Below are positions 29,066-56,197 of a DNA stretch of 64,000 nucleotides, one piece after another. Positions within the stretch are counted from its first letter, which is position 1. Every line of letters begins with the position of its first letter. The notes below the pieces were generated by a model. That model was not told the DNA's origin, searched no databases, and saw only the letters and a program-made list of their open reading frames with translations. A program made the translations under genes and the position numbers. The DNA lies in the IMG/VR virus record IMGVR_UViG_3300018080_008436, positions 248,001-312,000 of that record, one strand, 5' to 3'.

Positions 29066-29142
29066 TGGTGGCAACGAGAGGAGTCGAACCTCCGACGCTC
29101 TGCTCTTCAGGCAGACGCTCTTCCACACTGAGCTACGTTGCC
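29066..29142 (-). tRNA. tRNA-Phe(GAA)
   Basis: Cloverleaf, anticodon loop CTGAAGA, CCA. Confidence 0.93.
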
Positions 29143-29145
29143 ATT

Positions 29146-29221
29146 TGGTGGGATGCCTCGGTATCGAACCGAGTTCTCTGGTTTTTCAGACCAGCGCAAT
29201 GACCTCACCTGCTCACATCCC
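29146..29221 (-). tRNA. tRNA-Phe(GAA), divergent second copy
   Basis: Loop CTGAAAA, CCA. Confidence 0.9.
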
Positions 29222-29224
29222 AAT

Positions 29225-29288
29225 AAAAAACCCCGACCAGAAGTCGGGGCCAAAATACACGAAAAAAACCCCGACGAATGTCGAGGTT
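29225..29288 (-). terminator. Two tandem intrinsic terminators of the Phe attenuator
   Basis: AACCTCGAC-ATTC-GTCGGGGTT-T5 and GCCCCGAC-TTCTG-GTCGGGGT-T5. Confidence 0.85.
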
Positions 29289-29326
29289 AAAAAGATCTAA
29301 ACAACACTTTGATCTAACTACCTCGA

Positions 29327-29371
29327 CTAGAGGTGGCTAAAAAATCGAAAGATGTTGTTTAAGTTGTTCAT
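29327..29371 (-). CDS. Leader peptide MNNLNNIFRFFSHL (Phe attenuator)
   Basis: AAGGA RBS, TTT CGA TTT TTT, stop inside 1:2 hairpin. Confidence 0.8.
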   Translation of the reverse strand: MNNLNNIFRFFSHL

Positions 29372-29396
29372 AATGTAAAATCCTTTTGTTGCCCCT

Positions 29397-29427
29397 ATTA
29401 TAGGGTATCATCCATGCTTTTCAAGTC
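29397..29427 (-). promoter_or_regulatory. Sigma70-type promoter GACTTGAAA-N16-TATAAT
   Basis: Same motif at four non-coding RNA loci. Confidence 0.8.
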
Positions 29428-29439
29428 AGAACTGCAAAA

Positions 29440-29691
29440 TTAATCCAATTCAAGCATATCAATAAGATCAGCCTTACTTCTATATCCTGCAAACTTCAAC
29501 TGAGGATCATCCACAAAAGACATAGGAACGGCCATAATGCCGAGTCTTTGAGCTTCTTTGAGGTTATCTGGATCTTCAGTCGGCTTAAGCTCTACTTTTA
29601 CTTCTGGGTACTCTTCTACCAGTTTGTCAAGCTCTTTCTTGAGTCTCTTACATGGGATACAGTGCTCTCCTGTAAAAACTGTTACTTTCAT
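29440..29691 (-). CDS. Thioredoxin/glutaredoxin-like protein
   Basis: CIPC, cis-Pro AVP. Confidence 0.85.
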   Translation of the reverse strand: MKVTVFTGEHCIPCKRLKKELDKLVEEYPEVKVELKPTEDPDNLKEAQRLGIMAVPMSFVDDPQLKFAGYRSKADLIDMLELD

Positions 29692-29703
29692 TTTCTTTCT
29701 CCT

Positions 29704-30486
29704 TTAGGTTAAAAAATCTTTGTCAACGTAATGCACCATGAACTTACATACAGTATCGATAAGTTCATCAGGCATTCTTTTAAAACATTCGTTCACAAAC
29801 TCATCTGGAACGTTTTTGTAATATGCATGAGCAATTGAGCCAGCCATAGCCGCAATGGTATCGCTGTCTCCACCCATCATTACTGCTTCTCTTATTGTAC
29901 TCTCAAAATCCTCAGAATACAAGAAAGCGTATACAGCTTGCGGAACTGTCTCCTGGCAACTACAATTAAATCCTAGATGCTCAGAGGTCAAAATAAGGTC
30001 CGTTCTGTATCCAAACGACTCTACTGCTTCTCTAATTTCTTGCTTTGTCCCTCCATGCCAAGCTATGAATGTTGCCAAAGCAATTGCTTGAGCACCTTTA
30101 ACTCCCTCTTCATGATTATGAGTCGCATCAGCACTCTTTTTGGCCTCTGCTAGAACATCCTTTTTAGATCTGCAATAGAAAGCAACAGGGCTAACTCTCA
30201 TCGCAGACCCATTGCCATAACTATTATACCCTTCTTCTTGCTCACTTAAAGCCCACTCTTTGAAAGCACTACCATACCCTCTATCTTTGTAATTTCTATA
30301 GTATTCACGAATAGATTGTGAATAGTTTCCTGAATTCATCAAAACATCTGCTACTGCGCAGGTTAGAACAGTATCGTCAGTAAAAATACACTTCTTGTTG
30401 AATAGAAGAAAATTTTTGGTTTTGGGGTGTCTTTTTGGGCCTTCCCAACGAGAGCCTATTATGTCTCCTAAAATCGCGCCTATCAC
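29704..30486 (-). CDS. ADP-ribosylglycohydrolase (DraG/ARH family)
   Basis: GAILGDIIG, TDDT, GNGSAMR, GGDSDT; GTG start after AAAGGAGA. Confidence 0.92.
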   Translation of the reverse strand: MIGAILGDIIGSRWEGPKRHPKTKNFLLFNKKCIFTDDTVLTCAVADVLMNSGNYSQSIREYYRNYKDRGYGSAFKEWALSEQEEGYNSYGNGSAMRVSPVAFYCRSKKDVLAEAKKSADATHNHEEGVKGAQAIALATFIAWHGGTKQEIREAVESFGYRTDLILTSEHLGFNCSCQETVPQAVYAFLYSEDFESTIREAVMMGGDSDTIAAMAGSIAHAYYKNVPDEFVNECFKRMPDELIDTVCKFMVHYVDKDFLT

Positions 30487-31502
30487 AATCTTTCTCCTTT
30501 TACTCTTTCCTTTTCGTACCCTAACCAAACTTTCCAACTTTTCCAGCCTCTATCTTTATAAGTCCTATCTGGCACACTTGGTAAACAAACAGGTCTAGTA
30601 TTTTCTTTCCAATATAAACACCATTCTGTTTTGCTTCTTATTCCCAATTTATGAACGAATTTTTCTGCTTCTTTATAAGGCATAAACCCACTTTTTGCAA
30701 CTTTTATACTCCCCAAATCATAAAATTTGTTCTTTTTCCTTATTAAAAATAAATTCGAAGGAGTGTTATACATATATTCTCTTAAAAGTATCGAACTGTT
30801 CTTAGCCACCCTAACTCTATAATACTTCTCTTTTAAACTTCTAACATTCCCCCTAAAACCATTTATATTTTCTTTTAATTTTAATAACAAACCATATGAG
30901 AACTTCTCACTTCCACTAGTAAGAGATGATTCTATGGAGTTCCTAGATATAGATACATTACCGTCTCCGTCCCATAGCCCTCGTATAAAATCTGGCAGAA
31001 ATTCTTCTGGAACATTAGGCATTTCACATGTCAGGCTTTTTCTCTCAGTTCCACCTATTTTTTTAATTGATTCAACTAAATTTCTACAATAAATGTTCAA
31101 ATGACAATATTTGCTTCTTGTCTCTTTAATGGGTCCATCAAAACCCATCGTTTTTGCGATTAACTCTAATAGATATTTATCTTTATTACTTTGCGTAATT
31201 GAAAACAAACTTTCATAAATACACCCATCTGCCCACCAAAAACCCAAAATATACGCCATATCATGAGTCCATATCTCAAAGAAATCCTCATTTATCGAAT
31301 ATTTATCTCTTTTATAGGACATCTTTTTATACCCCATCCAATCCATGTACGAAACCCATTCCGACTTATATACTTGATGAGGACTGCGAGGAATGAATGG
31401 AGGTCTGTTGTTTTTACACCAATCTTCCCATTCTGACTGCTTTTTAAGACCTAATTGACGTACATATTGTCTTGCTTCTTCAAATAACAGGAATTTACTC
31501 AT
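30483..31502 (-). mobile_element. Free-standing LAGLIDADG homing endonuclease with flanking repeat domains
   Basis: AYILGFWWADG and FIRGLWDGDG motifs. Confidence 0.85.
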
Positions 31503-31531
31503 TTCTTACTCTCCTTAAATGTTTTCGTCAT

Positions 31532-31600
31532 TTAATTCAAATAATTATGCACTTTATCCTGCGATTGACCCAACATTTTTCCGATGATTGCTCCGATCAT
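31532..31600 (-). pseudogene. Orphaned original 5' end of the ADP-ribosylglycohydrolase gene
   Basis: MIGAIIG followed by frameshifted NVGS, matching IGAILGDIIGS downstream. Confidence 0.65.
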
Positions 31601-31627
31601 AGTCTTTGTCCTTGTATTAAATCGATA

Positions 31628-31942
31628 TTACCAAGCGGCTTTTATTGTATGATTTCCCTCGGCATCATATGTGATTTGTTGCCAATAACCAGATGAGTCT
31701 GTATGGAGAATAATCCTACCCAAAACATCGTATGACCAATACTGCCATGCTCCATTATAGAAATCAATCCTTACGCATTGTTTCTTATCATTATATGATC
31801 TTCTGTGCCATTCCCCTTTGGAATTATTGTAGGCTATCCAAAGCCCTGCTTTATCATACTCTTTGGTTTCCCAAACTCCATTATCATGGACATCTCGTAT
31901 GATTTGCCCCCCATCTTTCGTTCTTGTTACAAATGAAGGCAT
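31628..31942 (-). CDS. Hypothetical protein with YD-like repeats
   Basis: Repeats W...YDxxG; similar to 38529..38954. Confidence 0.6.
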   Translation of the reverse strand: MPSFVTRTKDGGQIIRDVHDNGVWETKEYDKAGLWIAYNNSKGEWHRRSYNDKKQCVRIDFYNGAWQYWSYDVLGRIILHTDSSGYWQQITYDAEGNHTIKAAW

Positions 31943-32004
31943 GTTGTTACCTCTTTCGTAAAGGCGTTGCACATCATTATTCTAAAAGCCGAATAGGGAA
32001 TCCT

Positions 32005-33108
32005 TTATCGGTGATCAGCCATCTCTTTCAGAATTCTTGAGAACCAAAGTTTTCTTGAAAATTCCCAAGCTTCATTTTGGGTTTCTTCGTTCTCATCTTT
32101 AACAGAAAAAGAACCCATTGGTATCCTTGCGGCTCCTGCACCCATTTTTCCGCCACCATGTTCTTTCCCAAAAATCTTTTTACAGATCTTATCAACATCA
32201 ATGGCCAGTCCGCTACTTCTAACACTGACTTCCAGGTTATCTCCGACAATAGCAACAATAAAAGAAGTGTCAATACCCTCGACTCTAGCTCTTTCTTCAG
32301 CTATACTTGGAAGGGCATCTCTTTTTGCAGGGGTTATGTAACCAATTCCTCCAAGAAACACTCCATTCTCTGAAATAGCATGTCCGTCATGGTCCAATCT
32401 TTTTCTAAGATCAAAATGATATGGTGGAATTGGATAGTTGATGATTTTAGCAAGCATTTTTTGATCTGTAACAACAATCAAGCTCTTATACGCATCAAAA
32501 TCGAGATCTGTAACGACATCTGTAACTAAATCGCACGTATCTGTCTTAATGCCAATTAACAATGCTGTTGCAACATTAGAATCTTCTTCTGACATTTTGT
32601 CGAACTCTATTTTAGCCTGCATCATGTATTCCCATACAATCGTGGAAGCAGAGCCGACACTTCTAATGTCTTTTAATTTTGCCTTCTTTGTATCACCTTT
32701 ATGATGATCAATAACCAAAGTGTAGACTGCATTGGGTATTGCGCTCCTTTCTGGAATGGTATCTACACAAACATATATGTCGGCAAAATTCTCAACATCT
32801 TCAGGAGTTTGAAGTTCCCCCTCAACCTCATCAACATGCGTTAACTGAAGATTAAGAACATTAATCATAGTTTTGTTTTGGGGATGGGAAATCTCTCCAC
32901 TATAAATCAAAGAAACTCTAGCTTCTGGAAGCCAACTTCTGATAAGTCTTTTGAGTCCATATGCAGATCCGATACAGTCTGGGTCTGGACAGGAATGCAT
33001 TGTTATTGCAATATGAAGTTGATGATTTGCCTCAAAAACCTCAAAAAGTTCATCTTTGAACTGATCTGCAATATGGTCAACATTCTTTACTTCTTCTTTT
33101 TCATCCAT
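32005..33108 (-). CDS. DHH/DHHA1 phosphoesterase (NrnA-like)
   Basis: HSCPDPDCIGS, VD, IDHH, DT, SVRS, GGG. Confidence 0.88.
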   Translation of the reverse strand: MDEKEEVKNVDHIADQFKDELFEVFEANHQLHIAITMHSCPDPDCIGSAYGLKRLIRSWLPEARVSLIYSGEISHPQNKTMINVLNLQLTHVDEVEGELQTPEDVENFADIYVCVDTIPERSAIPNAVYTLVIDHHKGDTKKAKLKDIRSVGSASTIVWEYMMQAKIEFDKMSEEDSNVATALLIGIKTDTCDLVTDVVTDLDFDAYKSLIVVTDQKMLAKIINYPIPPYHFDLRKRLDHDGHAISENGVFLGGIGYITPAKRDALPSIAEERARVEGIDTSFIVAIVGDNLEVSVRSSGLAIDVDKICKKIFGKEHGGGKMGAGAARIPMGSFSVKDENEETQNEAWEFSRKLWFSRILKEMADHR

Positions 33109-33180
33109 CTTCTTCTCCTTAATAAATAGAAAACGACTCCTACATTGGTTAATATAGGAGTCGTTTAGGATAAGTCAAGC

Positions 33181-33378
33181 TCAGGAAACAACTAAATTTT
33201 CAGATTCTTCTGACTCGTTTTCAGCCAGTAAATTCTCTTTACACTCTTCGCAAATTCCATGCGACAGCATAATTAGTCGATCCTCTACATAATGATCCAC
33301 TTCATGCGTAGAAATGCTGATAGTTTTTCTGCACCAAGCGCATCCAACTACAATCGTTTGTAAGTATATGTCTTTCAT
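33181..33378 (-). CDS. Hypothetical Zn-binding protein
   Basis: CAWC..SHGICEEC. Confidence 0.6.
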   Translation of the reverse strand: MKDIYLQTIVVGCAWCRKTISISTHEVDHYVEDRLIMLSHGICEECKENLLAENESEESENLVVS

Positions 33379-33575
33379 TTTTATTCCTACACATAGTGGG
33401 GTTAGTTTTCTTCCATTAGGGTATATTATACTACATATTCTGAGGAAGTCAAGTTAAGAAACTTATTTTTTTATAAGTTCGGCTTGACTTTGGCCAGAAA
33501 AGCCTTATACTAAATATTAAGTAATTGTTAACTTGATTAACAATCAGTTTGGAAAATTTCTAAAGGATGTGAAAA

Positions 33576-33668
33576 ATGAAACGTTTAGAAGACATGTTCA
33601 TGACCATGATGGAGAAGTCAACAGAGATCATTATCTTTGCTATCTTCTTGTTAATCATCTTGGCTTAA
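33576..33668 (+). CDS. 30-aa hydrophobic peptide (not in ORF track)
   Basis: MKRLEDMFMTMMEKSTEIIIFAIFLLIILA; AAGGA RBS; TTGACT-N16-TATACT at 33484..33511. Confidence 0.5.
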   Translation: MKRLEDMFMTMMEKSTEIIIFAIFLLIILA

Positions 33669-33684
33669 TACCACTCATCAGATT

Positions 33685-33762
33685 TGGTCGGGATAGCTGG
33701 ATTCGAACCAGCGACTCCTTGACCCCCAGTCAAGTGCTCTAACCAGGCTGAGCTACATCCCG
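33685..33762 (-). tRNA. tRNA-Pro(GGG)
   Basis: Loop CTGGGGG, C1-G72, CCA. Confidence 0.93.
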
Positions 33763-33811
33763 ACAATTATTCCGACACTTATCCCGACATTTTGTCGGGA
33801 TTCAGAAAAAC

Positions 33812-33926
33812 GCCAGTGTATTGCTCATTTATACTACCTCACAAAGTTTAGAATGCTGAATAGAACCTTATTCAAGTTCACTTTTAATAGTACTGTATGG
33901 GTGGGATTCGAACCCACATCTCTGGC
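33812..33926 (-). ncRNA. Permuted tRNA-like RNA carrying CAGCA module
   Basis: GCCAG/CTGGC ends, T-arm first (GTGGG TTCGAAT CCCAC), GAACTT-GAATA-AGGTTC-TATT-CAGCA. Confidence 0.5.
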
Positions 33927-33927
33927 T

Positions 33928-34003
33928 TGGTATCCCCAACGGGAATTGAACCCGTATCTGTTGGTTGAGAACCAACTATCCTAGACCGTTAGACGATGGG
34001 GAC
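33928..34003 (-). tRNA. tRNA-Glu(CTC)
   Basis: Loop TTCTCAA, CCA. Confidence 0.93.
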
Positions 34004-34010
34004 ATTAAAA

Positions 34011-34138
34011 ATGAGTCGGAAGGAATCGAACCTTCATTCCCTGGTTGATTTATTAAACATCAAATAGTTGCTGGAACGAAACTTATACAGTTTCACTTGG
34101 TTTTATGTCCAGGAGTTCTACCATTAAACTACGACCCA
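34011..34138 (-). ncRNA. tRNA-like RNA whose anticodon loop is replaced by a ~65-nt insert with CAGCAA module
   Basis: Intact acceptor, D and T arms, CCTGG/CCAGG stem, no encoded CCA. Confidence 0.7.
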
Positions 34139-34158
34139 AGTTGTATCTCTAATGAGAT

Positions 34159-34235
34159 TGGTCGGGTATGCAGGATTCGAACCTGCGATCTCATCATCCC
34201 AAATGATGCGCCTTACCAGACTAGGCTAATACCCG
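34159..34235 (-). tRNA. tRNA-Pro(TGG)
   Basis: Loop TTTGGGA, CCA. Confidence 0.93.
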
Positions 34236-34239
34236 ATAC

Positions 34240-34406
34240 AGAAGTGTTTTATCCTGTTAAACTATCCCCAACAAGATCGTACTTTAAGTCATCTGACACT
34301 AACTCATTTCTGACCCCAGAATATATTTTATTGTTTTGAATGTCAGTTCGTAACAACTACTTTACACTCTTAAGCCGAGGCTGGGACTCGAACCCAGATC
34401 TCTCCT
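34240..34406 (-). ncRNA. Circularly permuted tRNA mimic (YrlA-like topology)
   Basis: Order AGGAG, T-arm, CCTCGGC, long loop, GTTGGGG, D-arm, CTTCT. Confidence 0.6.
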
Positions 34407-34408
34407 TT

Positions 34409-34499
34409 TGGTGACGCAGACGGGATTCGAACCCGCAAAGGAATCTCTTCCTACCAGATTGAAAGTCTGGTTACTTCAGGCCAATTTGTATACTGCGCC
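34409..34499 (-). tRNA. tRNA-Glu(TTC) with long variable arm
   Basis: Loop CTTTCAA; AGGAA-GAGA-TTCCT extra arm; CCA. Confidence 0.85.
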
Positions 34500-34508
34500 A
34501 TTTTTTAG

Positions 34509-34626
34509 TCAGGACGGCTGGATTCGAACCAACTCCTTTAGCTCCTCAAGCTAAAATAAATATTGCTGTAGCGAACCTTATTGTCAAGTTCATGTTTATA
34601 ACGTGCTACCATTACACTACGTCCTG
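34509..34626 (-). ncRNA. tRNA-like RNA with ~47-nt CAGCAA module between D-arm and anticodon arm
   Basis: CAGGACG/CGTCCTG acceptor, TTAGC-TTGAGGA-GCTAA hairpin, T-arm; no encoded CCA. Confidence 0.7.
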
Positions 34627-34671
34627 ATGGTCTGACCCTCAAAAATCATAAGTCTGATTCTCGAAAAGTCA

Positions 34672-34750
34672 TGGTCTGGATGGTAGGATTCGAACCTACG
34701 CTACTCCTCAGTCCAAGTGAGGCGGGATGACCAGACTTCCCCACATCCAG
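34672..34750 (-). tRNA. tRNA-Pro(TGG), divergent
   Basis: Loop CTTGGAC, CCA. Confidence 0.88.
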
Positions 34751-34780
34751 ATTAAGTCTTCTAAATTTTCAAAGATCATT

Positions 34781-34856
34781 TGGTGACCCCAGTGGGAATC
34801 GAACCCAACCTTCCCAGGATGAAAACCTGGTGTCCTAGCCGATAGACGATGGGGCC
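34781..34856 (-). tRNA. tRNA-Glu(TTC)
   Basis: Loop TTTTCAT, CCA. Confidence 0.93.
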
Positions 34857-34865
34857 ATGGACAAT

Positions 34866-34931
34866 AAAAAAGCCCTCCTAACGCAAGCTAAGAGGGCACA
34901 AAAAAAGCCCTCCCGCTCATGGCAGAAGGGC
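34866..34931 (-). terminator. Two tandem intrinsic terminators of the Glu/Pro attenuator
   Basis: GCCCTTCTGC-CATGA-GCGGGAGGGC-T7 and GCCCTCTTAGC-TTGC-GTTAGGAGGGC-T6. Confidence 0.88.
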
Positions 34932-34953
34932 CAAAATCATAGTTATGATCTAA

Positions 34954-35031
34954 CTACAGATCGGCTGACCTCCTGCCAAAGGCTGGCGGTTCTTCTCGTT
35001 CTGGTTCTCGAATGTACATGTAGTTGTTCAT
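34954..35031 (-). CDS. Leader peptide MNNYMYIREPEREEPPAFGRRSADL (Glu/Pro attenuator)
   Basis: AAAGGA RBS; 4 GAA + 3 CCR within 8 codons. Confidence 0.8.
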   Translation of the reverse strand: MNNYMYIREPEREEPPAFGRRSADL

Positions 35032-35056
35032 AACAAATTTTCCTTTCGTTACCCCC

Positions 35057-35087
35057 ATTATAAACCATCCTAGAGACTTTTCAAGTC
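35057..35087 (-). promoter_or_regulatory. Promoter GACTTGAAA-N16-TATAAT
   Basis: Shared motif. Confidence 0.8.
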
Positions 35088-35168
35088 GAATTTGAAAATT
35101 TTTAGCAAAGTAATAAAAATAAAACGATTATGGCGACTTCCATATATACTGGATTACACCAGAAACAA

Positions 35169-35429
35169 CTAGTCTTGCTTAGAAATTGTCTCAACATCTA
35201 TATAATTCTTCCCCGTTAAAATCCAATTCTTCACTAACTTTTGCAAACATCTTGAGCAAAGAGCCGCTTCCTCATCTTTGACATCAAAATTATTCAAAGA
35301 GATCTGAATACAGACTTTCTTCCCCTTATTGTCCATCTCTATAGTAAACTCTTGGTCACCAAGTACCCCCGTTTCTGGAGTTACTTGGCAACCACAAGAG
35401 TCACATAGATATTCTATCTTAATCGCCAT
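35169..35429 (-). CDS. Hypothetical Zn-binding protein
   Basis: CDSC..CSRC. Confidence 0.6.
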   Translation of the reverse strand: MAIKIEYLCDSCGCQVTPETGVLGDQEFTIEMDNKGKKVCIQISLNNFDVKDEEAALCSRCLQKLVKNWILTGKNYIDVETISKQD

Positions 35430-36465: not shown

Positions 36466-36476
36466 TGGTGTCCCTC

Positions 36477-37283: not shown

Positions 37284-37701
37284 CGGTATAAGCCTCAAAA
37301 TTAAGATCTTCAAAGCAGAAGCCAAGAAGGGGTTCAATTAGCTCATCCAGAGGAACATTATTTTTTCTAGCTTTTTCTCTGATGTTATGAGCAAACATAT
37401 TAGCGGACTCAACGAAGTTTTTTAATTCTTCGATATTATTGGATTCCAAAGTGCCAATCCATGTTGCTATTGGCTGATTGCAGGAACATTTGATTACACA
37501 ACTTCCATGAACATGATCTACTTCCAATTCAAGGAACTCAAACTCAGTGCAATCTTCTAAATGTTGTTTAATATCTTCTTCGAAACTCATGAGAATTGAA
37601 CTTTTTTCTTTGAAATAATAGACTTTGTGCAAAAATGTATTTATATCGATAATCCCTTCTGCACGTAATTTAATAAGACGATCTAATTCTTTAGAGTCCA
37701 T
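37276..37701 (-). CDS. Hypothetical protein
   Basis: ORF track. Confidence 0.6.
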   Translation of the reverse strand: MDSKELDRLIKLRAEGIIDINTFLHKVYYFKEKSSILMSFEEDIKQHLEDCTEFEFLELEVDHVHGSCVIKCSCNQPIATWIGTLESNNIEELKNFVESANMFAHNIREKARKNNVPLDELIEPLLGFCFEDLNFEAYTDG

Positions 37702-37723
37702 TATAGCTGTTTTGAAAATGTTT

Positions 37724-38065
37724 TCAAGTTTCGTTGCTTCTTACCCATTCAGGCACTTCGCCTTCTTCCCAACGGATAGCTCTGTCCAAATCTTCTTGAG
37801 TGGGCATCAGAATATTGTTTGATATCATATAATTCTGCCAATCTTCCCCAAACTGTTCTCGGCATAAAGCTTGACCCCAATCAAACAACTCTCCTGAAAT
37901 TGAGTAAACGGTATTCCCATGTTTCTCATTCATTCTCTTGACCCATTCAAAAACACCTAATACTACTTGTTTTTGCTGTTCTTCGAGACTCATTTGATCT
38001 ACTGCTTCTTCTACTACCTCATTTGATTCTTGAGTAATGTCCATTTTTTCCTCAATGGTTTTCAA
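37724..38065 (-). CDS. Hypothetical protein
   Basis: ORF track. Confidence 0.6.
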   Translation of the reverse strand: MKTIEEKMDITQESNEVVEEAVDQMSLEEQQKQVVLGVFEWVKRMNEKHGNTVYSISGELFDWGQALCREQFGEDWQNYMISNNILMPTQEDLDRAIRWEEGEVPEWVRSNET

Positions 38066-47833: not shown

Positions 47834-47851
47834 ATAAGGAGATTTTTTCAA

Positions 47852-49251: not shown

Positions 49252-49269
49252 ATTTAAGGAGATTTTCAA

Positions 49270-49377
49270 ATGGCACAAATATTAGATACAGATTATGTAG
49301 GTGATAGTTTAGACAAATTGTTATTGAATCCGAATACAACAGTAAAAGGAACAGCAACTGGAGGAGTAATAAGATAA
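49270..49377 (+). pseudogene. Family B gene collapsed by in-frame internal deletion (35 aa)
   Basis: MAQILDTDYVGDSLDKLLLNPNTTV fused to KGTATGGVIR*. Confidence 0.8.
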
Positions 49378-50099
49378 TGGGTGGACCAAATATTCAAACA
49401 AGCGATTATGTAGGTGATAGTCTTGATAAGTTGATCCTTTCAAATAACAAGACTGTCAATCTCGACAACTCAATGAGTACAAGTGAGATTCTGGCGTTAG
49501 TGAATGATCAACCTCGCAATCTTAATGGCTACACTCTGACGTTTCAGTTTGCAGATGGCACCTACAATTTGAGCAATACATTGGACTTCCGAGGGTTTCA
49601 TGGCGGAACTTTGTATATCCATGGGAATACAAGTGAAACTGATGCAACCGTTAAGCATACTACTCAGCAAGTCCATCTTAATGGCGCTTCAGTTGATGGG
49701 AATGTCATATTTGTATTTAGTTGTCAAAGTTACATCCAGATAAGGAATTTGAAGGTAACAGTTAAGGATTACAACAATGCAGGTGGGATCGTTGTACAAG
49801 GCTGTTGTCAAATTTTCATCCAATACAATTATGTTGTTGGTAGTGGGAAGTCAAATGCGAGGGCGGCAATTAGAGTTGATACATCGATTGGTGGAGTTTA
49901 TTCGAATTATGTGAGCAATATTCCTTATGGGATTGATTGTAATTTCGGAAAAATTTATTCTTATGACAATGATGACACTGGGACTCAACCTAACTATGGG
50001 CTGTTAGCTGGCTCTGGTGCAACAATTGGAAAAGGAAGTACTCAACCAACTGGTTCAATATCCAATGAAACAACAGGAAATGGAGCAGTGATAAGATAA
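49377..50099 (+). CDS. Family B beta-helix-like protein
   Basis: Paralog. Confidence 0.7.
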   Translation: MGGPNIQTSDYVGDSLDKLILSNNKTVNLDNSMSTSEILALVNDQPRNLNGYTLTFQFADGTYNLSNTLDFRGFHGGTLYIHGNTSETDATVKHTTQQVHLNGASVDGNVIFVFSCQSYIQIRNLKVTVKDYNNAGGIVVQGCCQIFIQYNYVVGSGKSNARAAIRVDTSIGGVYSNYVSNIPYGIDCNFGKIYSYDNDDTGTQPNYGLLAGSGATIGKGSTQPTGSISNETTGNGAVIR

Positions 50100-50209
50100 T
50101 GACACAGATATTAGATACAGATTACGTTGGTGATAGTTTAGATAAGTTGTTATTGAATTCAAATACAACAGTCAATTTAACATTAAAAGCAAAAAGGGAA
50201 AAGACATGA
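50099..50209 (+). pseudogene. Truncated family B 5' stub (36 aa)
   Basis: MTQILDTDYVGDSLDKLLLNSNTTVNLT then unrelated sequence. Confidence 0.75.
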
Positions 50210-50394
50210 ATACATTTATAGCACGAAAGGATAACGGTGATAAAATTTCCTTCTTAGAAGGAAATTTTAAACTTGGTGGATTAAATCCAGAATATGAAGC
50301 AAAGTATTGTGATTGTGATGAGAACACAACCAATACTTCGGAAATCGCAGATTGGGACACCGCTTTGGATGTGTCATATGTAATTGATGAATAA
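50206..50394 (+). CDS. Hypothetical protein
   Basis: ATGA-coupled to stub. Confidence 0.45.
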   Translation: MNTFIARKDNGDKISFLEGNFKLGGLNPEYEAKYCDCDENTTNTSEIADWDTALDVSYVIDE

Positions 50395-50586
50395 GAAGGA
50401 GAGACAATAAAATGGGCGCTTTTATTATTTGTTTATTGTTAATTGGTCTCCTAATACTAATTTGTAATTTATTAACACCAAAACTCATTGTTGTTACAAA
50501 AGCGGCAAAACTAGAAAGACGTTTTAATAATTATAGGCAAATTATTTTTCTTTTAGAGATAGAAGATAATTAATTAGGAATAAATT

Positions 50587-52059
50587 ATGGTAAACAGAAT
50601 ATTTGACGATTATCAAGGACCATCCATTAAAATAAATGGAGTCTGTTATAAATGGGCTGGGGAAACAACTGAACCCTTTAATTCTCACCCCAGTGAAATT
50701 GAAGGAACTTTTGATACTTGCTTGGAATGTGCAATAGAAAGTTCTTCAAGTTTGTCTTCTGAATCTGAGTCCTCTGAATCAATTAATAACTTTAGCTCTT
50801 CTTCTGAATCAATTGAAAATACTTCATCAAGTGAATCAATTGCATGTCAAGAAGGAGATATCCAATTTGTGCTAAGTCAAGCAAACGCATTACAATTCTC
50901 TCCCCCAGTATTTCAAGGAGCCATTGACGAAGGAATTGTTTGTATTGATGGAATTCGAGAGGGAACTTACACAAACTATGGGCAGGAAGATCTTATTGTT
51001 TTGAGTGACCCAGGAGCTTATGTGAATTATACTGCTGGACAAACTGTTGAAGTTTGTGAAGGGCAATGTCCTCAAGTTTCAAGTTCTTCAAGTTCTGAAG
51101 CATATAGTTCAGAGAGTTCAAGTAGTTCGTTCCCTGAAGGTATATTCTTAAAAATGGAATACGATGCAAGTACGAGTCTTACAACACAGCTTCGATTCGA
51201 TAATGTAATTGATTACGGAGATGCTATTATATATTGGGGAGATGGAGATACTACTGATATTAGTGGTACTGGGAACGGTACAGAAAACCATGTTTATGAT
51301 TCTAGTGGAACCTATGAGGTTAAAATAAGTGCTACTGGCAATTTTTGGTTAGGACAATCTACCACTACTTCATATCGAACAGGGTATAAAAAAATTACCC
51401 AATGGGGAGATGTAAAATGGTCCAGATGTGATTTCTCCTTTGCCAACCTTCCAGACCTAGAGGTGACAGCAACAGATTATCCTGATTTATCAAATGTAAC
51501 AGATGTTAGATATATGCTTGCTGGTTGTACGAATATGGTTGGAGACCAGCATGACTGGGCATGGGATATGACAGGAGTAACTGATTTAAGCCACATGTTT
51601 CAGAATTCTCTTGCTTTTAACGGCACTGTTCAAAACTTTAGCAACATGGGAGATGCAGAGAACCTGTCGTTCATGTTTGTGGGGAATGGCAGAAGTAATC
51701 CTGGTTCGTTCAATCAACCGATTGGAGTTTGGGATACATCTAGTGTAACAGATATAACTCAAATGTTACAATATCAGCCTGATTTTGATCAGGATTTATC
51801 AAACTGGGATGTTAGTAACGTGACAGATACTGCTCAATTTATGGAGAATTTTGGTGTTGAAGAGTTATCAAATGCAAACTATAACGCACTTCTGATTTCA
51901 TGGGGTGGACAATCATTAATCTCTCATGGCGATACTATTTCTTTTGGAAAAAGTAAGTATACAGATGACAGCGGAGATTGCCCAAGTTGTCCTATTACAA
52001 CAGGCAGAAGTGCTATAGCGGCGGCATGGGGTACATTACGAGATGGTGGGTCTGTTTAA
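50587..52059 (+). CDS. Family A modular protein with PKD-like and BspA/DUF285 repeats
   Basis: WGDG, FNQPIGVWDTSSVT, QDLSNWDVSNVT. Confidence 0.75.
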   Translation: MVNRIFDDYQGPSIKINGVCYKWAGETTEPFNSHPSEIEGTFDTCLECAIESSSSLSSESESSESINNFSSSSESIENTSSSESIACQEGDIQFVLSQANALQFSPPVFQGAIDEGIVCIDGIREGTYTNYGQEDLIVLSDPGAYVNYTAGQTVEVCEGQCPQVSSSSSSEAYSSESSSSSFPEGIFLKMEYDASTSLTTQLRFDNVIDYGDAIIYWGDGDTTDISGTGNGTENHVYDSSGTYEVKISATGNFWLGQSTTTSYRTGYKKITQWGDVKWSRCDFSFANLPDLEVTATDYPDLSNVTDVRYMLAGCTNMVGDQHDWAWDMTGVTDLSHMFQNSLAFNGTVQNFSNMGDAENLSFMFVGNGRSNPGSFNQPIGVWDTSSVTDITQMLQYQPDFDQDLSNWDVSNVTDTAQFMENFGVEELSNANYNALLISWGGQSLISHGDTISFGKSKYTDDSGDCPSCPITTGRSAIAAAWGTLRDGGSV

Positions 52060-52069
52060 GGAGTAAATT

Positions 52070-52660
52070 ATGGCTAACAGAATATTTGATGATTATCAAG
52101 GAGCATCCGTTAAAATAAACGGTATTTGCTATAAATTTATTGGAGAAACAACAAGACCATTTGATTCTCATCCAAGTGAAATTGAAGGAACTTTTGATAC
52201 TTGTTTGGCATGTGCTGTTGAAAGTTCATCTTCAGAAAGTACCCAGTCTTCCAGTTCTGAATCAATTAATAACTTTAGCTCTTCTTCTGAATCAATTGAA
52301 AATACTTCATCAAGTGAATCAATTGCATGTCAAGAAGGAGATATCCAATTTGTGCTAAGTCAAGCAAACGCTTTGCAATTTTCTCCCCCAGTATTTTTCG
52401 GAGTTATTCCAGAAGGAACCGTTTGTGTTGATGGGGTACATGAAGGAACTTATACAAATTATGGTGGAGAAGATTTAATTGTTTTTAGTGATTCAGGAGC
52501 TTATCAAAGCTATACTGATGGACAAACCATTGAAGTTTGTGAAGGGGTTTGTTTGCCACAAGCAGTTTATAAGTATAGCAATCTACAACTGAATGTATCA
52601 CCAAACACATATAGATATACTCCAGTTATAATTGAGTCAAGTTCATCAAGTTCAGGATAA
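52070..52660 (+). CDS. Family A modular protein (short, mosaic)
   Basis: 5' end like 45054, middle like 50587. Confidence 0.7.
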   Translation: MANRIFDDYQGASVKINGICYKFIGETTRPFDSHPSEIEGTFDTCLACAVESSSSESTQSSSSESINNFSSSSESIENTSSSESIACQEGDIQFVLSQANALQFSPPVFFGVIPEGTVCVDGVHEGTYTNYGGEDLIVFSDSGAYQSYTDGQTIEVCEGVCLPQAVYKYSNLQLNVSPNTYRYTPVIIESSSSSSG

Positions 52661-52675
52661 ATTTTAGGAGGATTT

Positions 52676-53158
52676 ATGGATTTATATTTTTTACAAGACC
52701 AAGGAGACGCTTTGGTTTATAATGACGGAATTGCATATGAGTTTGTTGAGCAAACAGTTCAAGTCCCAAATGCAAGTGGAGCGCAAGTTATTGAAGGAAA
52801 CATCTCTTCATTTAATTTCAGCATTGCTGACGCACAATTAAAAACAGCTTACACTGCTGGTGAACATGCTTTGGCTTTTTATGTTGATGAAAATAAAATT
52901 GAAGTTGACATGCCCCTTGCCAACACTTGGTATACTTTCCCCGATGTTCCAGTTGCAGGAGTTATTCGGGTTTGGCAAACGGGAGCATTTTACCCAAACA
53001 TAAAAATTAATGGTATTGATCAGGCCGTTAACGCAGGAACAAGCAAAGCTAGTGCAATGCCATACAATGTTGCTGTTGGAGATGTAATCGAAATACGAGA
53101 ACCAACTACTAGTGGAAACACTGGGTACGGATATATATTGCCATTTGTTTATCCATAA
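52676..53158 (+). CDS. Hypothetical beta-rich protein
   Basis: AGGAGG RBS. Confidence 0.65.
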   Translation: MDLYFLQDQGDALVYNDGIAYEFVEQTVQVPNASGAQVIEGNISSFNFSIADAQLKTAYTAGEHALAFYVDENKIEVDMPLANTWYTFPDVPVAGVIRVWQTGAFYPNIKINGIDQAVNAGTSKASAMPYNVAVGDVIEIREPTTSGNTGYGYILPFVYP

Positions 53159-53159
53159 A

Positions 53160-53179
53160 TTGGGCGCAAGGATTGAATT
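53160..53179. repeat. Duplicate of tRNA-His 3' end (att-like)
   Basis: TTGGGCGCAAGGAttGAATT vs 53711..53730, 18/20 match. Confidence 0.6.
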
Positions 53180-53217
53180 AAAAAAGGGTGGACTAAGTCC
53201 ACCCTTTAACATTTACT

Positions 53218-53547
53218 TCATTCAGTTAGTACAGGGATCTTCTTCGGTTTGCCCCTACTAGACTTCGGCAAACTAATTTTAAGAACTCCATTGTCTAAAG
53301 CACTTTTTATCTTACTTACCGCAACATCATTTGGAAGTCTGAAGGATAAATCTTTTTTGCCATAAGCTCTCTTCCTATATCCACCTTCTTTATCTCGTTC
53401 CCAAGAAATGTCCAAATAATTGTCCTTTGCATAAACCTCTACTTTGTCCTTCTCGACACCTGGCATATCAACTCTTACTTCATAGCTTTCATCATTTGTC
53501 CAAGTGTCATACTCAACGTCTCTGTTAAAAAAGAAATCAGAATACAT
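53218..53547 (-). CDS. Small heat-shock protein (Hsp20/alpha-crystallin)
   Basis: VDMPGVEKDKV..FRLP..LDNGVLKISLPK. Confidence 0.9.
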   Translation of the reverse strand: MYSDFFFNRDVEYDTWTNDESYEVRVDMPGVEKDKVEVYAKDNYLDISWERDKEGGYRKRAYGKKDLSFRLPNDVAVSKIKSALDNGVLKISLPKSSRGKPKKIPVLTE

Positions 53548-53592
53548 AACTTGTTCCTCCTTTAGTTAGTTTGTTATGCAATTTTACTAAAA

Positions 53593-53609
53593 AGCAAAAC
53601 ACATGCCAA
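53593..53609 (-). promoter_or_regulatory. Sigma54 -24/-12 promoter of hsp20
   Basis: TTGGCATGTGTTTTGCT (GG-N10-GC). Confidence 0.65.
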
Positions 53610-53677
53610 CTCTATTTAAGCAGGAATCTAGGTAAGAAAAGGGACAGTTTGACACATATAAGTGAGACAAATGGGCG

Positions 53678-53706
53678 CAAAAAAGCGCCATCCTAAAATG
53701 GCGCTT
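53678..53706 (-). terminator. Terminator ending tRNA operon 3
   Basis: AAGCGCCAT-TTTAGG-ATGGCGCTT-T4. Confidence 0.75.
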
Positions 53707-53711
53707 GAGTT

Positions 53712-53803
53712 TGGGCGCAAGGACGGAATTCGAATCCGTAGGGGAGATTACCTCCAACAGGGTCACAACCTGTCACGCTAAGCCAATTACGTTCTACCTT
53801 GCG
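53712..53803 (-). tRNA. tRNA-His(GTG) with long variable arm
   Basis: Loop TTGTGAC, GGAG-GTAAT-CTCC arm, C73, no encoded G-1. Confidence 0.8.
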
Positions 53804-53804
53804 A

Positions 53805-53880
53805 TGGGCTACTCGACGGATCTTGAAACCGCAACCTCCAGGGCCACAACCTAGCGCTCTGCCTTTGAGCTACGAGTAGC
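53805..53880 (-). tRNA. tRNA-His(GTG)
   Basis: G-1:C73, loop TTGTGGC. Confidence 0.88.
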
Positions 53881-53891
53881 ATCAAATTGGT

Positions 53892-54563
53892 CTATCCCAA
53901 CCATTTGTCTCTTTTAAATCCACCTATTTCTTGAATGCCTCCCATAATTTTTTGTTTTATTTCAACGCTGTGTAATCTTACTGTGCAAATTCCGTATTTT
54001 AGTTTACCCTGAAATTCGCTAGATTTAAAATAACATTTTCTCAAATTTTCTTTCGTCAAACTAAGTGCATTAAGCCAAAATTCAACAATCTCTTGTTCAG
54101 AAACTCCATTGTTTGTATAGGCATTTATAGAAAGAGCAAATCTTTTTTCTTCAAACTCAAAGTGTTCTCTAAGGAACTTCATAAAAAGAATCATCATGTC
54201 AATATCGCTATTGCAGAATGTCACTCCTTTATTGGATTCTTTTGTTCCTTCTGCCCAATAAAGAATACAGCCAACCCGAAAACTTTCAGATATTTTAGCA
54301 AGTGCTCTTCCATCAGTTTGCCACTTCCTTCTTTTTCTTCTGAATTTTTCCGAATATTTCTCCTGTTTACCAAAATAACCACCTTTTCTTGTTTTTGTCC
54401 TGTGCCGCAATTTTAGGTTTTCTATTTGTTCTTTCGTTAGTTGAATATCTCGAACCCATAAACTAACAGACGATTGAGACACATCTAGAATCTTGGCTAT
54501 TTTCTTTATAGATTGTCCACTTTTTCTTAGTTCTCTTGCTTTGTTTCTTTCGACTTTTTTCAT
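53892..54563 (-). mobile_element. HTH + single-motif LAGLIDADG-like endonuclease inside tRNA operon
   Basis: SIKKIAKILDVSQSSVSLW HTH; ILYWAEGTK..FCNSD; start trimmed to MKKVE. Confidence 0.6.
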
Positions 54564-54621
54564 TTTCGAACCCCCATAGTTATATGTGATATAACATATT
54601 ATACAGCAAGTTCGAACTTTT

Positions 54622-54696
54622 TGGTAGCAGTATCGGGACTTGAACCCGAACGGCACTCCTTATGAAAGAGTCGCACTACCATTATGCTATACTGCT
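54622..54696 (-). tRNA. tRNA-Met or Ile2 (CAT)
   Basis: Loop TTCATAA, CCA. Confidence 0.85.
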
Positions 54697-54750
54697 ATGA
54701 AAGTCTTGGGCTAACCATTGCCCAACCTAGCGTCATTTATCGTATCCAAT

Positions 54751-54825
54751 TGGCGGTGATAAGGGGAATCGAACCCCTGTCCTCTGGGCGACAACCAGAA
54801 ATCCTAGCCATTAAACGATATCACC
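54751..54825 (-). tRNA. tRNA-Asp(GTC)
   Basis: Loop TTGTCGC, G73, CCA. Confidence 0.9.
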
Positions 54826-54831
54826 GATAAG

Positions 54832-54905
54832 CGGAACCGAAGGGACTCGAACCCTCAATCTCCTGATCGACAGTCAGGGGCACTAACCAATTGCGCTACG
54901 GCTCC
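54832..54905 (-). tRNA. tRNA-Asp(GTC), CCA not encoded
   Basis: Loop CTGTCGA. Confidence 0.88.
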
Positions 54906-55023
54906 ATAAAACTGAAAGCTCTAAAGTTTTCGTTAGTCTTTTTGCTTTCGCTCATACTCCTATACTCTTTATTGTCCAATCCAGTTGTCAATTGGCTCTA
55001 AGGAACGATACGAACTTTCAGTT

Positions 55024-55100
55024 TGGTGACGACAGTTGGACTTGAACCAACGCTCTCCAGTGTGTCGAACTGGCGATTTATCCATCTAATCTATGCCGTC
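55024..55100 (-). tRNA. tRNA-Val(GAC), C33
   Basis: Loop TCGACAC, CCA. Confidence 0.8.
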
Positions 55101-55104
55101 AATT

Positions 55105-55182
55105 TGGTTCTGCGAGAGGGACTTGAACCCCCGACCTCCTCCTTATCAGGGAGGCGCTACTTACCATCTGAGCTACCGCAGA
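55105..55182 (-). tRNA. tRNA-Ile(GAT)
   Basis: Loop CTGATAA, CCA. Confidence 0.9.
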
Positions 55183-55187
55183 ATCAT

Positions 55188-55278
55188 TGGTGGGAGTAGC
55201 AGGACTTGAACCTGCGTTTACCTTTCGGCCTCCTGTGTATCAGACAGGCGCTCTAACCAAATACTGAGCTATACTCCC
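55188..55278 (-). tRNA. tRNA-Ile(GAT) with long variable arm
   Basis: Loop CTGATAC; GCC-GAAA-GGT arm; CCA. Confidence 0.85.
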
Positions 55279-55338
55279 ATAACATTCTTTTTGCATTGTA
55301 ACATCATCAATGTTATCGTGCAAATTTGATGTTACAAT

Positions 55339-55413
55339 TGGCAGGGACGAAAGGATTTGAACCCTTACCGCATGGTTTTGGAGACCAGCAGGCTACCATT
55401 ACAACACGCCCCT
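55339..55413 (-). tRNA. tRNA-Trp(CCA)
   Basis: Loop CTCCAAA, G73. Confidence 0.9.
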
Positions 55414-55418
55414 GTTAG

Positions 55419-55494
55419 TGGTACTCCTACCAGAACTCGAACCTGGATCTTCGACTTCGAAGGCCGTTATTCTAATCCATTGAACTATAGGAGC
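55419..55494 (-). tRNA. tRNA-Arg(TCG)
   Basis: Loop CTTCGAA. Confidence 0.88.
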
Positions 55495-55528
55495 ATCTAC
55501 ATATAAATTTTCAAAGAACTCTAATTCT

Positions 55529-55605
55529 TGGTACACCCAGCAGGATTTGAACCTGCAACCTCCTGGTTCGTAGCCAGACGCTCTATCCAATTGAGCTATG
55601 AGTGC
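55529..55605 (-). tRNA. tRNA-Arg(ACG)
   Basis: Loop CTACGAA. Confidence 0.93.
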
Positions 55606-55610
55606 AACTT

Positions 55611-55687
55611 TGGTACTCCTGGCGGGACTCGAACCCACATAGACCTGTTTAGAAGACAGGTGCCTGATCCAGTTAGACTACAGGAGC
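55611..55687 (-). tRNA. tRNA-Arg(TCT)
   Basis: Loop CTTCTAA. Confidence 0.92.
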
Positions 55688-55854
55688 ATCTAAAATTATT
55701 TCAACTTTTCTTTCGCTTTTTTCAAATCCTCAATTAACTGTTTCTTTGAGTAGTTTCTGCCTACCCAAACTAATTCATACATTTTCTCGTCTTTTTGATT
55801 CTGAACACTGTTCAGAACTCGTTCTAAAATCTCTTGTGCTGTTTCTTTCATTTT

Positions 55855-55929
55855 TGGCCTCTCCTATAGGACTCGAACCTATATCTGCGGTTTAGGAAAC
55901 CGATATTCTATCCCTTGAACTAAGGAGAG
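55855..55929 (-). tRNA. tRNA-Arg(CCT)
   Basis: Loop TTCCTAA. Confidence 0.9.
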
Positions 55930-55937
55930 TCAGGCAC

Positions 55938-55970
55938 AAAAAAAGCCCAAGCTCCTTAGAGCCTGGGCTT
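55938..55970 (-). terminator. Attenuator terminator of tRNA operon 3
   Basis: AAGCCCAGGCTC-TAAG-GAGCTTGGGCTT-T5. Confidence 0.88.
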
Positions 55971-55988
55971 CGTAAATCTGCTTATCTA

Positions 55989-56069
55989 TCAGAACATGCG
56001 ATAGCGCAGATCAGAAGCCCTGTGGCTCCAATCGCGTCTAATAATATGCATGTCTCTAACAACGTTCAT
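55989..56069 (-). CDS. Leader peptide MNVVRDMHIIRRDWSHRASDLRYRMF (multivalent attenuator)
   Basis: TAAGGA RBS; codons match the downstream tRNA set. Confidence 0.8.
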   Translation of the reverse strand: MNVVRDMHIIRRDWSHRASDLRYRMF

Positions 56070-56166
56070 TTTTCTTAAATCCTTATTCGATTTAGTTTTT
56101 CAACTTACCCTCATTAGTCACATTTGATTTGAGTTTTTCTCAGATCTGTACCAAGAAGTTATTATC

Positions 56167-56197
56167 ATTATAAGCCTTATTCAGAGTATTTCAAGTC
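56167..56197 (-). promoter_or_regulatory. Promoter GACTTGAAA-N16-TATAAT
   Basis: Shared motif. Confidence 0.8.

Follow-up and report, generated by a model that had tools for sequence, protein, structure and literature searches.

Analysis of a 64,000-nucleotide window of DNA from an environmental phage of roughly 0.5 Mb, represented by contigs of 476 and 525 kb, revealed that each tRNA gene cluster is preceded by a short leader open reading frame (ORF), spelled with codons read by the tRNAs of that cluster, and by a transcription terminator with a predicted alternative antiterminator. On this computational evidence, the arrangement most likely represents ribosome-mediated transcription attenuation of the trpL/hisL/pheM type applied to tRNA genes, so that more of a tRNA set is made only when ribosomes run short of it. 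The first-pass annotation had described this layout for the three clusters of the window and had proposed the same mechanism. The layout was confirmed and extends beyond the window, and the proposed mechanism is supported.

ARAGORN predicted 20 tRNAs in the window, all of them on the - strand and located in three clusters. Cluster A (29066-29221) comprises two tRNA-Phe(GAA) genes. Cluster B (33685-34856) comprises Glu-TTC, Pro-TGG, Glu-TTC, Pro-TGG, Glu-CTC and Pro-GGG; the Rfam search revealed additional tRNA-like genes in this cluster that were missed by ARAGORN, and two tRNA-like genes with a 64-nt insert lie at 34509-34626 and 34011-34138. Cluster C (53805-55929) comprises Arg-CCT, Arg-TCT, Arg-ACG, Arg-TCG, Trp, two Ile, Val, two Asp, Met and His, with ORFs inserted at 55700-55851 and 53892-54656 and an operon-end terminator-like hairpin near 53674-53710.

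Inspection of the - strand upstream of each cluster revealed a shared order of promoter, Shine-Dalgarno site, leader ORF of 14 to 26 codons, antiterminator/terminator pair and tRNAs. The promoters (TTGAAA-N16-TATAAT, within GACTTGAAA-N16-TATAAT) are located at 29397-29427 (A), 35057-35087 (B) and 56167-56197 (C). Five matches with at most one mismatch were found in the window, against 0.02 expected. This promoter type is not exclusive to the tRNA operons, since it also occurs at 60831-60861 before a noncoding region and, with one mismatch, at 37700-37730. In leaders A, B and C, AAGGA lies 9 to 10 nt before ATG AAC. Leader ORF A (29327-29371) has 14 codons plus stop with the control codons TTT CGA TTT TTT (FRFF), and its AAGGA lies 9 nt upstream. 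Leader ORF B (34954-35031) has 25 codons plus stop with the control run GAA CCA GAA CGA GAA GAA CCG CCA (EPEREEPP). Leader ORF C (55989-56069) has 26 codons plus stop, and its control run, VVRDMHIIRRDWSHR, covers codons 3 to 17 and samples 9 of the 10 distinct anticodons of the operon, the exception being Arg-TCG. Leader B does not sample Glu-CTC or Pro-GGG.

Each ORF is followed by G+C hairpins with T-runs that end 3 to 14 nt before the first tRNA in A, B and C. This distance leaves no room for a separate promoter, and the tRNAs must therefore be made by read-through. An independent consensus scan ranked the same promoters and terminators at the top of their regions. Leaders A and B carry two tandem terminators, whereas leader C carries one. 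In attenuator A (29229-29327), the 5' strand of the antiterminator (about 29320-29327) pairs with the 5' arm of terminator T1 (stem at 29267-29288), and a second terminator, T2, has its stem at 29229-29251. In attenuator B (34872-34978), the antiterminator 5' strand (about 34969-34978) lies inside the ORF and pairs with the T1 5' arm; the T1 stem is at 34906-34932, and the T2 stem is at 34872-34897. In both leaders, the 3' arm of T1 can pair with the 5' arm of T2 (4:5 helix), and this helix is as stable as either terminator, at -13.8 to -18.6 kcal/mol. In attenuator C (55942-56031), antiterminator 5' strands (about 56014-56031, inside the ORF) pair with the terminator 5' arm, an inner hairpin holds the stop codon, and the terminator stem (55942-55971) is followed by a T-run.

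To verify whether the codon match exceeds chance, the leaders were compared with other short ORFs and with simulated sequences. Among 816 ATG-initiated short ORFs of 10 to 45 codons in the window plus flank, only the leader itself reached its cognate-run score for B, C and D (cluster D is described below). The simulated P values were 0.03 (A), 3e-4 (B), 2e-6 (C), <5e-7 (D) and 7e-4 (E). Leader A alone is thus statistically weak, with 3 Phe codons in 13, and its orthologue in the related phage sequence L286 has only one Phe in the control position. The 5x5 matrix of leaders against tRNA sets is diagonal, with 3/13, 7/24, 18/25, 15/24 and 10/27 cognate codons on the diagonal against 0 to 7 off it and a summed -log10 P of 18.8. 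The true assignment ranked 1 of 120 permutations.

Clusters D and E belong to the same phage but lie just outside the window, and both follow the rule. Cluster D carries Cys, Tyr, Leu and Ser tRNAs. Residues 3 to 15 of its leader are all S, L, C or Y, and its codons sample 10 of 10 anticodons; given a fully cognate run, this coverage has a P of 0.02. Cluster E carries Val-TAC and Ala tRNAs, and its leader holds a Val/Ala run.

The first-pass annotation had named the absence of leader/tRNA covariation in homologous loci as grounds for rejecting the idea; this was examined, and the finding survived. Fourteen orthologous leaders were identified in related metagenomic phages, which share 63 to 77% identity in flanking proteins, and these leaders keep the ORF, the control codons and the two alternative helices. 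Eight C-type, five B-type and four A-type leaders keep the ORF and its cognate run. In all 5 leaders of this phage and all 14 orthologues, AAGGA, AGGAA or GGAG lies 7 to 10 nt before the ATG of an ORF of 14 to 28 codons. Val codons largely track the presence and type of a Val tRNA, although one relative, L173, keeps one GTA codon without a detectable Val tRNA. In L173, a 1-nt deletion frameshifts the peptide tail, while the control run and the RNA helices are kept. As a negative control, tRNA clusters in more distant relatives were scored and had no matching short ORF (scores of 0 to 4 against 7 to 13).

Each leader has a G+C hairpin of -10 to -21 kcal/mol followed by a run of 5 to 7 U, and compensatory base changes support both alternative helices. 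In the terminator, 98.9% of cells are paired, and 4 pairs have changes on both sides. In the main helix of the antiterminator in the C-type alignment, 95.8% of cells are paired, and 3 pairs have changes on both sides. Columns 148/149 of the terminator 5' arm covary with both partners.

To study the effect of ribosome position, the RNA 3' of a ribosome was folded before the terminator 3' arm exists. The predicted antiterminator, whose 5' edge lies about 13 nt after the control run, is intact for A-site positions up to about the end of the control run and is lost afterwards in 18 of 18 leaders analyzed. Assuming a 13-nt 3' footprint, the switch boundary falls within 0 to 4 codons of the end of the control run. 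C-type leaders showed the loosest fit, with the last 2 to 4 control codons (W, H, R) lying past the predicted boundary. Full-length equilibrium folds favor the terminators whatever the ribosome position, so the model needs kinetic, cotranscriptional folding. Without any ribosome, leaders B and C are predicted to form the antiterminator, unlike trp.

These results are best explained by a model, held with good confidence, in which each tRNA operon of this phage is gated by a ribosome-mediated attenuator. A strong sigma-70-type promoter would start a transcript whose first element is a short ORF, inferred to be translated. If decoding of any control codon is slow because cognate charged tRNA is scarce, the ribosome stalls upstream, the antiterminator forms, and RNA polymerase reads into the tRNA genes. 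If all control codons are read quickly, the ribosome runs into the antiterminator strand and melts it, the terminator forms, and transcription stops. In leaders A and B, the freed 3' arm of terminator 1 is predicted to sequester the 5' arm of terminator 2 in the ON state, an unusual attenuator design. The inferred net effect is negative feedback that keeps making a tRNA set until every member is sufficient, with read-through triggered by a shortage of any one member (an OR gate over isoacceptors). A point against this model is that stalling also reports amino acid starvation, in which making more tRNA would not help.

tRNA genes are usually thought to be controlled at the promoter, through growth rate and stringent control, and phage tRNA arrays are usually treated as constitutive cargo. 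Here, the decoding rate of the very codons that a tRNA set serves appears to decide whether that set is transcribed. The model explains why the phage sorts its 38 or more tRNAs into amino acid groups and bears on whether phage tRNAs serve codon compensation or replacement of tRNAs destroyed by host defenses. The leaders would also provide compact natural sensors of 150 to 250 nt for the availability of specific isoacceptors, which could serve as reporters of tRNA pools.

The same device might have been selected for counterdefense, as the first-pass annotation had suggested for host nucleases: anticodon nucleases of the host or of competitors would deplete particular tRNAs, and the leader would detect the resulting stall and induce replacement tRNAs. 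Phage tRNAs are documented to rescue infection from tRNA-cleaving defenses (PMC10264068, PMC11555353, PMC11464382). Furthermore, the window encodes a polynucleotide kinase-phosphatase-like protein at 17483-18910, relatives encode Rnl1-type RNA ligase and RtcB near the clusters, and sampling by isoacceptor would detect the loss of a single species. However, this purpose has no direct evidence here and remains tentative, because nothing in the sequence distinguishes nuclease attack from ordinary supply-and-demand imbalance or codon-usage mismatch with a host whose identity and defenses are unknown, and because all tRNA groups found so far are gated in the same way, not only classical nuclease targets. 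It is likewise possible, but no more than that, that a clade of huge phages runs every tRNA operon under its own attenuator that polls each isoacceptor of the operon, as a codon-resolved, closed-loop controller of tRNA supply that also works as an inducible countermeasure when tRNA-cleaving immunity or tRNA shortage makes ribosomes stall.

It is unlikely that the leaders sense amino acid charging, as classical attenuators do, without feedback on tRNA abundance. Ribosome stalling reports charged tRNA, so uncharged tRNA would trigger read-through as well, in line with trp/his attenuation and its modeling (PMC1183508). However, making more tRNA during starvation gives no obvious benefit. In addition, leader D uses six different Ser and Leu codon families matching 8 distinct Ser/Leu anticodons, which is unnecessary for sensing an amino acid but expected for sensing tRNA species. 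Least probable is that the promoters make small RNAs or micropeptides that end at constitutive terminators with leaky read-through into the tRNAs, although the strong tandem terminators of A and B look constitutive in equilibrium folds and terminated attenuator RNAs and leader peptides can act in trans in other bacteria (PMC7968998, PMC7298713), because a chance codon match is excluded and the match recurs in the two clusters outside the window, the antiterminator covaries with the terminator arm, and the frameshifted tail in L173 argues against a conserved micropeptide; a trans role of the terminated RNA is not excluded as an additional function.

The leaders share with the attenuators of amino acid biosynthesis operons of Enterobacteria (trpL, hisL, pheL, thrL, leuL, and ilvL) a promoter-proximal leader with a run of regulatory codons, an intrinsic terminator, and an overlapping antiterminator whose formation depends on where the ribosome sits, the latter being predicted here. 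Leaders for several amino acids are already known, e.g., thrL (Thr and Ile) and ilvL (Ile, Val, and Leu). In contrast, the regulated genes here are tRNAs of a phage and not enzymes, so that the loop would close on the sensor molecule itself. The leaders cover up to 7 amino acids and sample individual isoacceptors, the stop codon sits inside an inner hairpin of the antiterminator, two leaders have tandem terminators with a predicted relay (4:5) helix, and no clear 1:2 pause or anti-antiterminator hairpin was seen in the predicted folds of B and C. The pheM leader of the Escherichia coli pheST (phenylalanyl-tRNA synthetase) operon is a Phe-codon attenuator that controls a component of the translation apparatus and responds to the level of charged tRNA-Phe, and leader A (FRFF) is its direct analogue. 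pheM controls a synthetase, whereas here the target is the tRNA gene itself; in the relative L284, a protein with a PheS N-terminal domain follows the Phe leader. T-box riboswitches also adjust translation-related genes to the state of a specific tRNA through a terminator/antiterminator choice, but a T-box binds uncharged tRNA directly and needs no translation. No T-box hit was obtained with Rfam at E <= 1 over 28000-64000 on either strand, and here an ORF carries the specificity. The tRNA arrays of T4, T5, mycobacteriophages and huge phages are likewise clusters of phage-encoded tRNAs thought to compensate for codon usage or to replace tRNAs destroyed by host defenses (PMC10264068, PMC11555353, PMC11464382). 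No description of leader-peptide or attenuator control of those arrays, or of tRNA genes in general, was found in the searchable literature. In this phage, the tRNAs are also sorted into amino acid groups, each with its own putative sensor.

Analysis of the window with ARAGORN revealed 20 tRNA genes, all of which are located on the - strand in three clusters. Cluster A (29066-29221) comprises Phe and Phe. Cluster B (33685-34856) comprises, in transcription order, Glu-TTC, Pro-TGG, Glu-TTC, Pro-TGG, Glu-CTC and Pro-GGG. Cluster C (53805-55929) comprises Arg-CCT, Arg-TCT, Arg-ACG, Arg-TCG, Trp, Ile, Ile, Val, Asp, Asp, Met and His. The - strand upstream of each cluster showed the same order of parts. 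A GACTTGAAA-N16-TATAAT promoter is followed by an AAGGA Shine-Dalgarno site positioned 9-10 nt before ATG AAC and by a short ORF (29327-29371 in leader A, 34954-35031 in leader B and 55989-56069 in leader C). Downstream of the ORF, hairpins and G+C stems followed by T-runs end 3-14 nt before the first tRNA. No room is left for another promoter, so the tRNAs must be transcribed through the terminators. The promoter pattern was found 5 times in the window at <=1 mismatch, compared to 0.02 expected, and a separate consensus scan ranked these promoters and terminators as the best in their regions. A fourth exact copy of the tRNA-operon promoter (60831-60861) drives about 470 nt of noncoding sequence (60360-60861, - strand), which ends in a terminator just before a DUF2828/DUF7788 gene (58917-60350, - strand). 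Orthologues in L173, L175 and L181 (loci on contigs of related phages) have a similar gap, and L181 has RtcB next to it. No Rfam hit and no PDB sequence hit were obtained for this region, which may be a Ro60/Y-RNA-like module or another attenuator.

Closer inspection of the operons revealed additional elements. Operon B contains two tRNA-like genes (34011-34138 and 34509-34626, - strand) with normal acceptor, D and T arms, in which a 64-nt insert replaces the anticodon loop. These genes were found by Infernal and missed by ARAGORN, and they are conserved inside the Glu/Pro operon of relatives (15031-15149 in locus L174 and 5831-5949 in locus L284). Isolated T-arm-like minihelices (GGGTTCGA.TCCC hairpins; 33890-33925 and 34380-34415, - strand) follow two of the tRNA-Glu genes of operon B. 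Operon C contains two protein-coding ORFs on the - strand. The first (53892-54656), between tRNA-Met and tRNA-His, encodes a 254-aa HTH protein, has its own promoter-like site and may be a mobile endonuclease-type insert, and the second (55700-55851) is a 50-aa ORF between Arg-CCT and Arg-TCT. A weak extra tRNA-like sequence (53718-53801, - strand) lies directly after tRNA-His and precedes the operon-end terminator. It scored 28.4 bits in Rfam and was called a second His-GTG by relaxed ARAGORN.

To verify whether the codon match between leaders and tRNAs exceeds chance, the codons read by the anticodons of each cluster were defined by standard wobble, and the background codon use was taken from 63 long ORFs. 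The comparison also included leaders D and E, which belong to two clusters outside the window. The numbers of cognate codons in the own column of each leader were 3/13 (A), 7/24 (B), 18/25 (C), 15/24 (D) and 10/27 (E), whereas the off-diagonal values were 0-7, and the true pairing ranked first of 120 permutations. Among 816 ATG-sORFs of 10-45 codons in the window plus flank, only the leader itself reached its run score for B, C and D. The simulated P values were 0.03 (A), 3e-4 (B), 2e-6 (C), <5e-7 (D) and 7e-4 (E); thus, leader A is weak on its own. At the anticodon level, the leaders sample 1/1 (A), 2/4 (B), 9/10 (C) and 10/10 (D) distinct species, so that some isoacceptors are not sampled. 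Given a fully cognate run, complete coverage is itself unlikely (P = 0.02 for D). CGA (Arg) codons are located inside the Phe control run of leader A (29343-29345) and the Glu/Pro control run of leader B (35008-35010 and 34996-34998), and they are kept in several orthologues (the A-type leaders of loci L284 and L286 and the B-type leaders of loci L286 and L287). tRNA-Arg(TCG) of operon C is the only cluster C anticodon that leader C does not sample. This could reflect cross-coupling between operons or a slow codon that sensitizes the switch.

Clusters D and E served as two out-of-sample tests, because both lie in DNA that was not part of the first-pass annotation. Cluster D is positioned about 4-9 kb beyond the window end (locus L033) and carries Cys x2, Tyr x2, Leu x5 and Ser x5. 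Upstream of this cluster, AACTTGAAA-N16-TATAAT, AGGAA and an ORF were found. Residues 3-15 of the ORF read SLSLSLCSSYLSL, and every one of them is Ser, Leu, Cys or Tyr. An antiterminator and a terminator follow. The protein encoded upstream of leader D has no relatives, and a walk of 10 kb upstream of cluster D revealed no further tRNA cluster. Cluster E is positioned about 9 kb before the window start (locus L282). It begins with Val-TAC, Ala-TGC, an Ala-like gene and Ala-GGC and then runs off the locus, so that it is incomplete. Its leader contains VEIAIAVVAVAVVA, followed by the same kind of hairpins. Thus, all five known clusters follow the rule.

The window sequence, bases 248001-312000 of the 476-kb IMG/VR contig 3300018080_008436, was also found in a 296-kb and a 525-kb contig. 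No close relative was found among GenBank phages: blastn of the three leader regions matched only tRNA bodies, and tblastn with the RecD2-like helicase gave at most 31% identity. Pattern scans of IMG/VR for promoter, RBS and ATG returned only this phage on two contigs plus chance hits, none of them next to tRNAs, although one of these scans used a gap range that misses C-type leaders and is not informative for them. IMG/VR protein searches with flanking genes revealed only the same phage and one distant contig without tRNAs. A scan of a genome collection for the conserved C-leader core found nothing and gave no clue to the host.

The OGFr_N-like gene located just upstream of leader C has homologues at 35-77% identity. 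Their contigs, together with a metagenome scan using an alignment of these proteins, gave seven further C-type leaders. All keep an ORF of 26-30 codons with the core (D)MHI(I)RRWD(D)R. The full-length contigs carry Arg x3, Trp, Ile, Asp, Met and His tRNAs, some of which were recovered only by Infernal or by relaxed ARAGORN, whereas loci L186 and L232 are cut off after three Arg tRNAs. The Val codons of the leader largely track the Val tRNA of the operon. The window leader has GTT GTT with Val-GAC, L182 has GTA with Val-TAC, L181 has GTA with Val-AAC, L184 has GTA with Val-GAC (an imperfect match), and L177 has neither Val codons nor a Val tRNA. L173 is an exception, with one GTA and no Val tRNA detected. 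Contigs found through the ADP-ribosylglycohydrolase gene gave four further B-type leaders, all with E-x-P-E-x-E(E)-P-P before Glu/Pro tRNAs, and three further A-type leaders, with FFRFFSF, FSFF and a weaker IRF, before tRNA-Phe. In L284, the gene downstream of the Phe-rich leader is a tRNA-Phe-like sequence identified only by eye, and a 90-aa protein with a PheS N-terminal domain (11318-11590) follows it. More distant relatives of the OGFr_N-like gene (<=56% identity), which were used as a negative control, carry other tRNAs or none next to the marker gene and have no matching sORF, with scores of 0-4 against 7-13. In L173, a 1-nt deletion just after the control run frame-shifts the rest of the peptide, while the nucleotide sequence and helices are kept. 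Selection therefore acts on the control codons and the RNA structure and not on the peptide tail.

Analysis of the 8-sequence alignment of C-type leaders revealed that both alternative helices are well supported. The terminator helix is paired in 98.9% of cells, with 4 pairs changed on both sides, and the main antiterminator helix is paired in 95.8% of cells, with 3 such pairs. Both values beat slid and shuffled controls. Alignment columns 148/149, which lie in the terminator 5' arm, covary with both partners, as predicted for two mutually exclusive, selected helices. Full-length equilibrium folding with a masked ribosome did not show a switch, because the terminators dominate. Therefore, only the RNA 3' of a ribosome (A-site +13 nt) was folded, truncated before the terminator 3' arm. 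In all 18 leaders analyzed by this approach, the antiterminator sequesters the terminator arm while the A-site is anywhere up to about the end of the control run and is lost within 0-4 codons after that. The C-type leaders fit least tightly, because their last 2-4 control codons lie past the boundary. Leaders A and B, and the L284 orthologues of both (the B one also seen in L174), have two tandem terminators with near-identical stems. The 3' arm of the first can pair with the 5' arm of the second (the 4:5 helix) at -13.8 to -18.6 kcal/mol, which is as stable as either terminator. Cotranscriptional folding snapshots in the stalled state showed the antiterminator plus this 4:5 helix. A relay could therefore switch both terminators off, although this step is inferred.

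On this computational evidence, the most economical reading is negative feedback on tRNA supply, in which transcription of a tRNA set continues until all of its members decode fast enough. The first-pass annotation proposed that such feedback acts against tRNA depletion or cleavage by host anticodon nucleases. This remains a tentative possibility, which fits current knowledge that phage tRNAs counter tRNA-cleaving defenses (PMC10264068, PMC11555353, PMC11464382). It also fits the nearby RNA-repair genes. The phage lineage carries a translation and RNA-repair toolkit, including a kinase-phosphatase of the polynucleotide kinase type and a PIN-PhoH protein (17483-18910 and 25619-26953, both on the - strand), and relatives (loci L173, L175, L179-L181 and L284-L287) add RNA ligases (Rnl1 type and PF09414), RtcB and an IF3 homologue next to the tRNA operons.

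Searches of the accessible full-text literature, which did not cover most subscription journals and thus cannot exclude an older report, revealed no description of leader peptides or attenuation controlling phage tRNA operons, arrays or clusters, and a key paper on phage tRNAs does not mention attenuators, leaders, terminators or promoters. Scans with Rfam (28000-64000, both strands) gave no hit for T-box or other cis-regulators, and T-box membership is excluded on this basis. Five of the six sequence-level features that define a leader-peptide attenuator were found in these leaders, whereas the evidence for the sixth, the trp-style 1:2 hairpin, was ambiguous, with a clear hairpin seen only in leader A. 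The phage leaders further differ from trpL, hisL and pheM in that the regulated genes are tRNAs, that the leaders cover up to seven amino acids and poll isoacceptors, that the stop codon lies in an inner hairpin of the antiterminator, that there are tandem terminators, and that the system is phage encoded.
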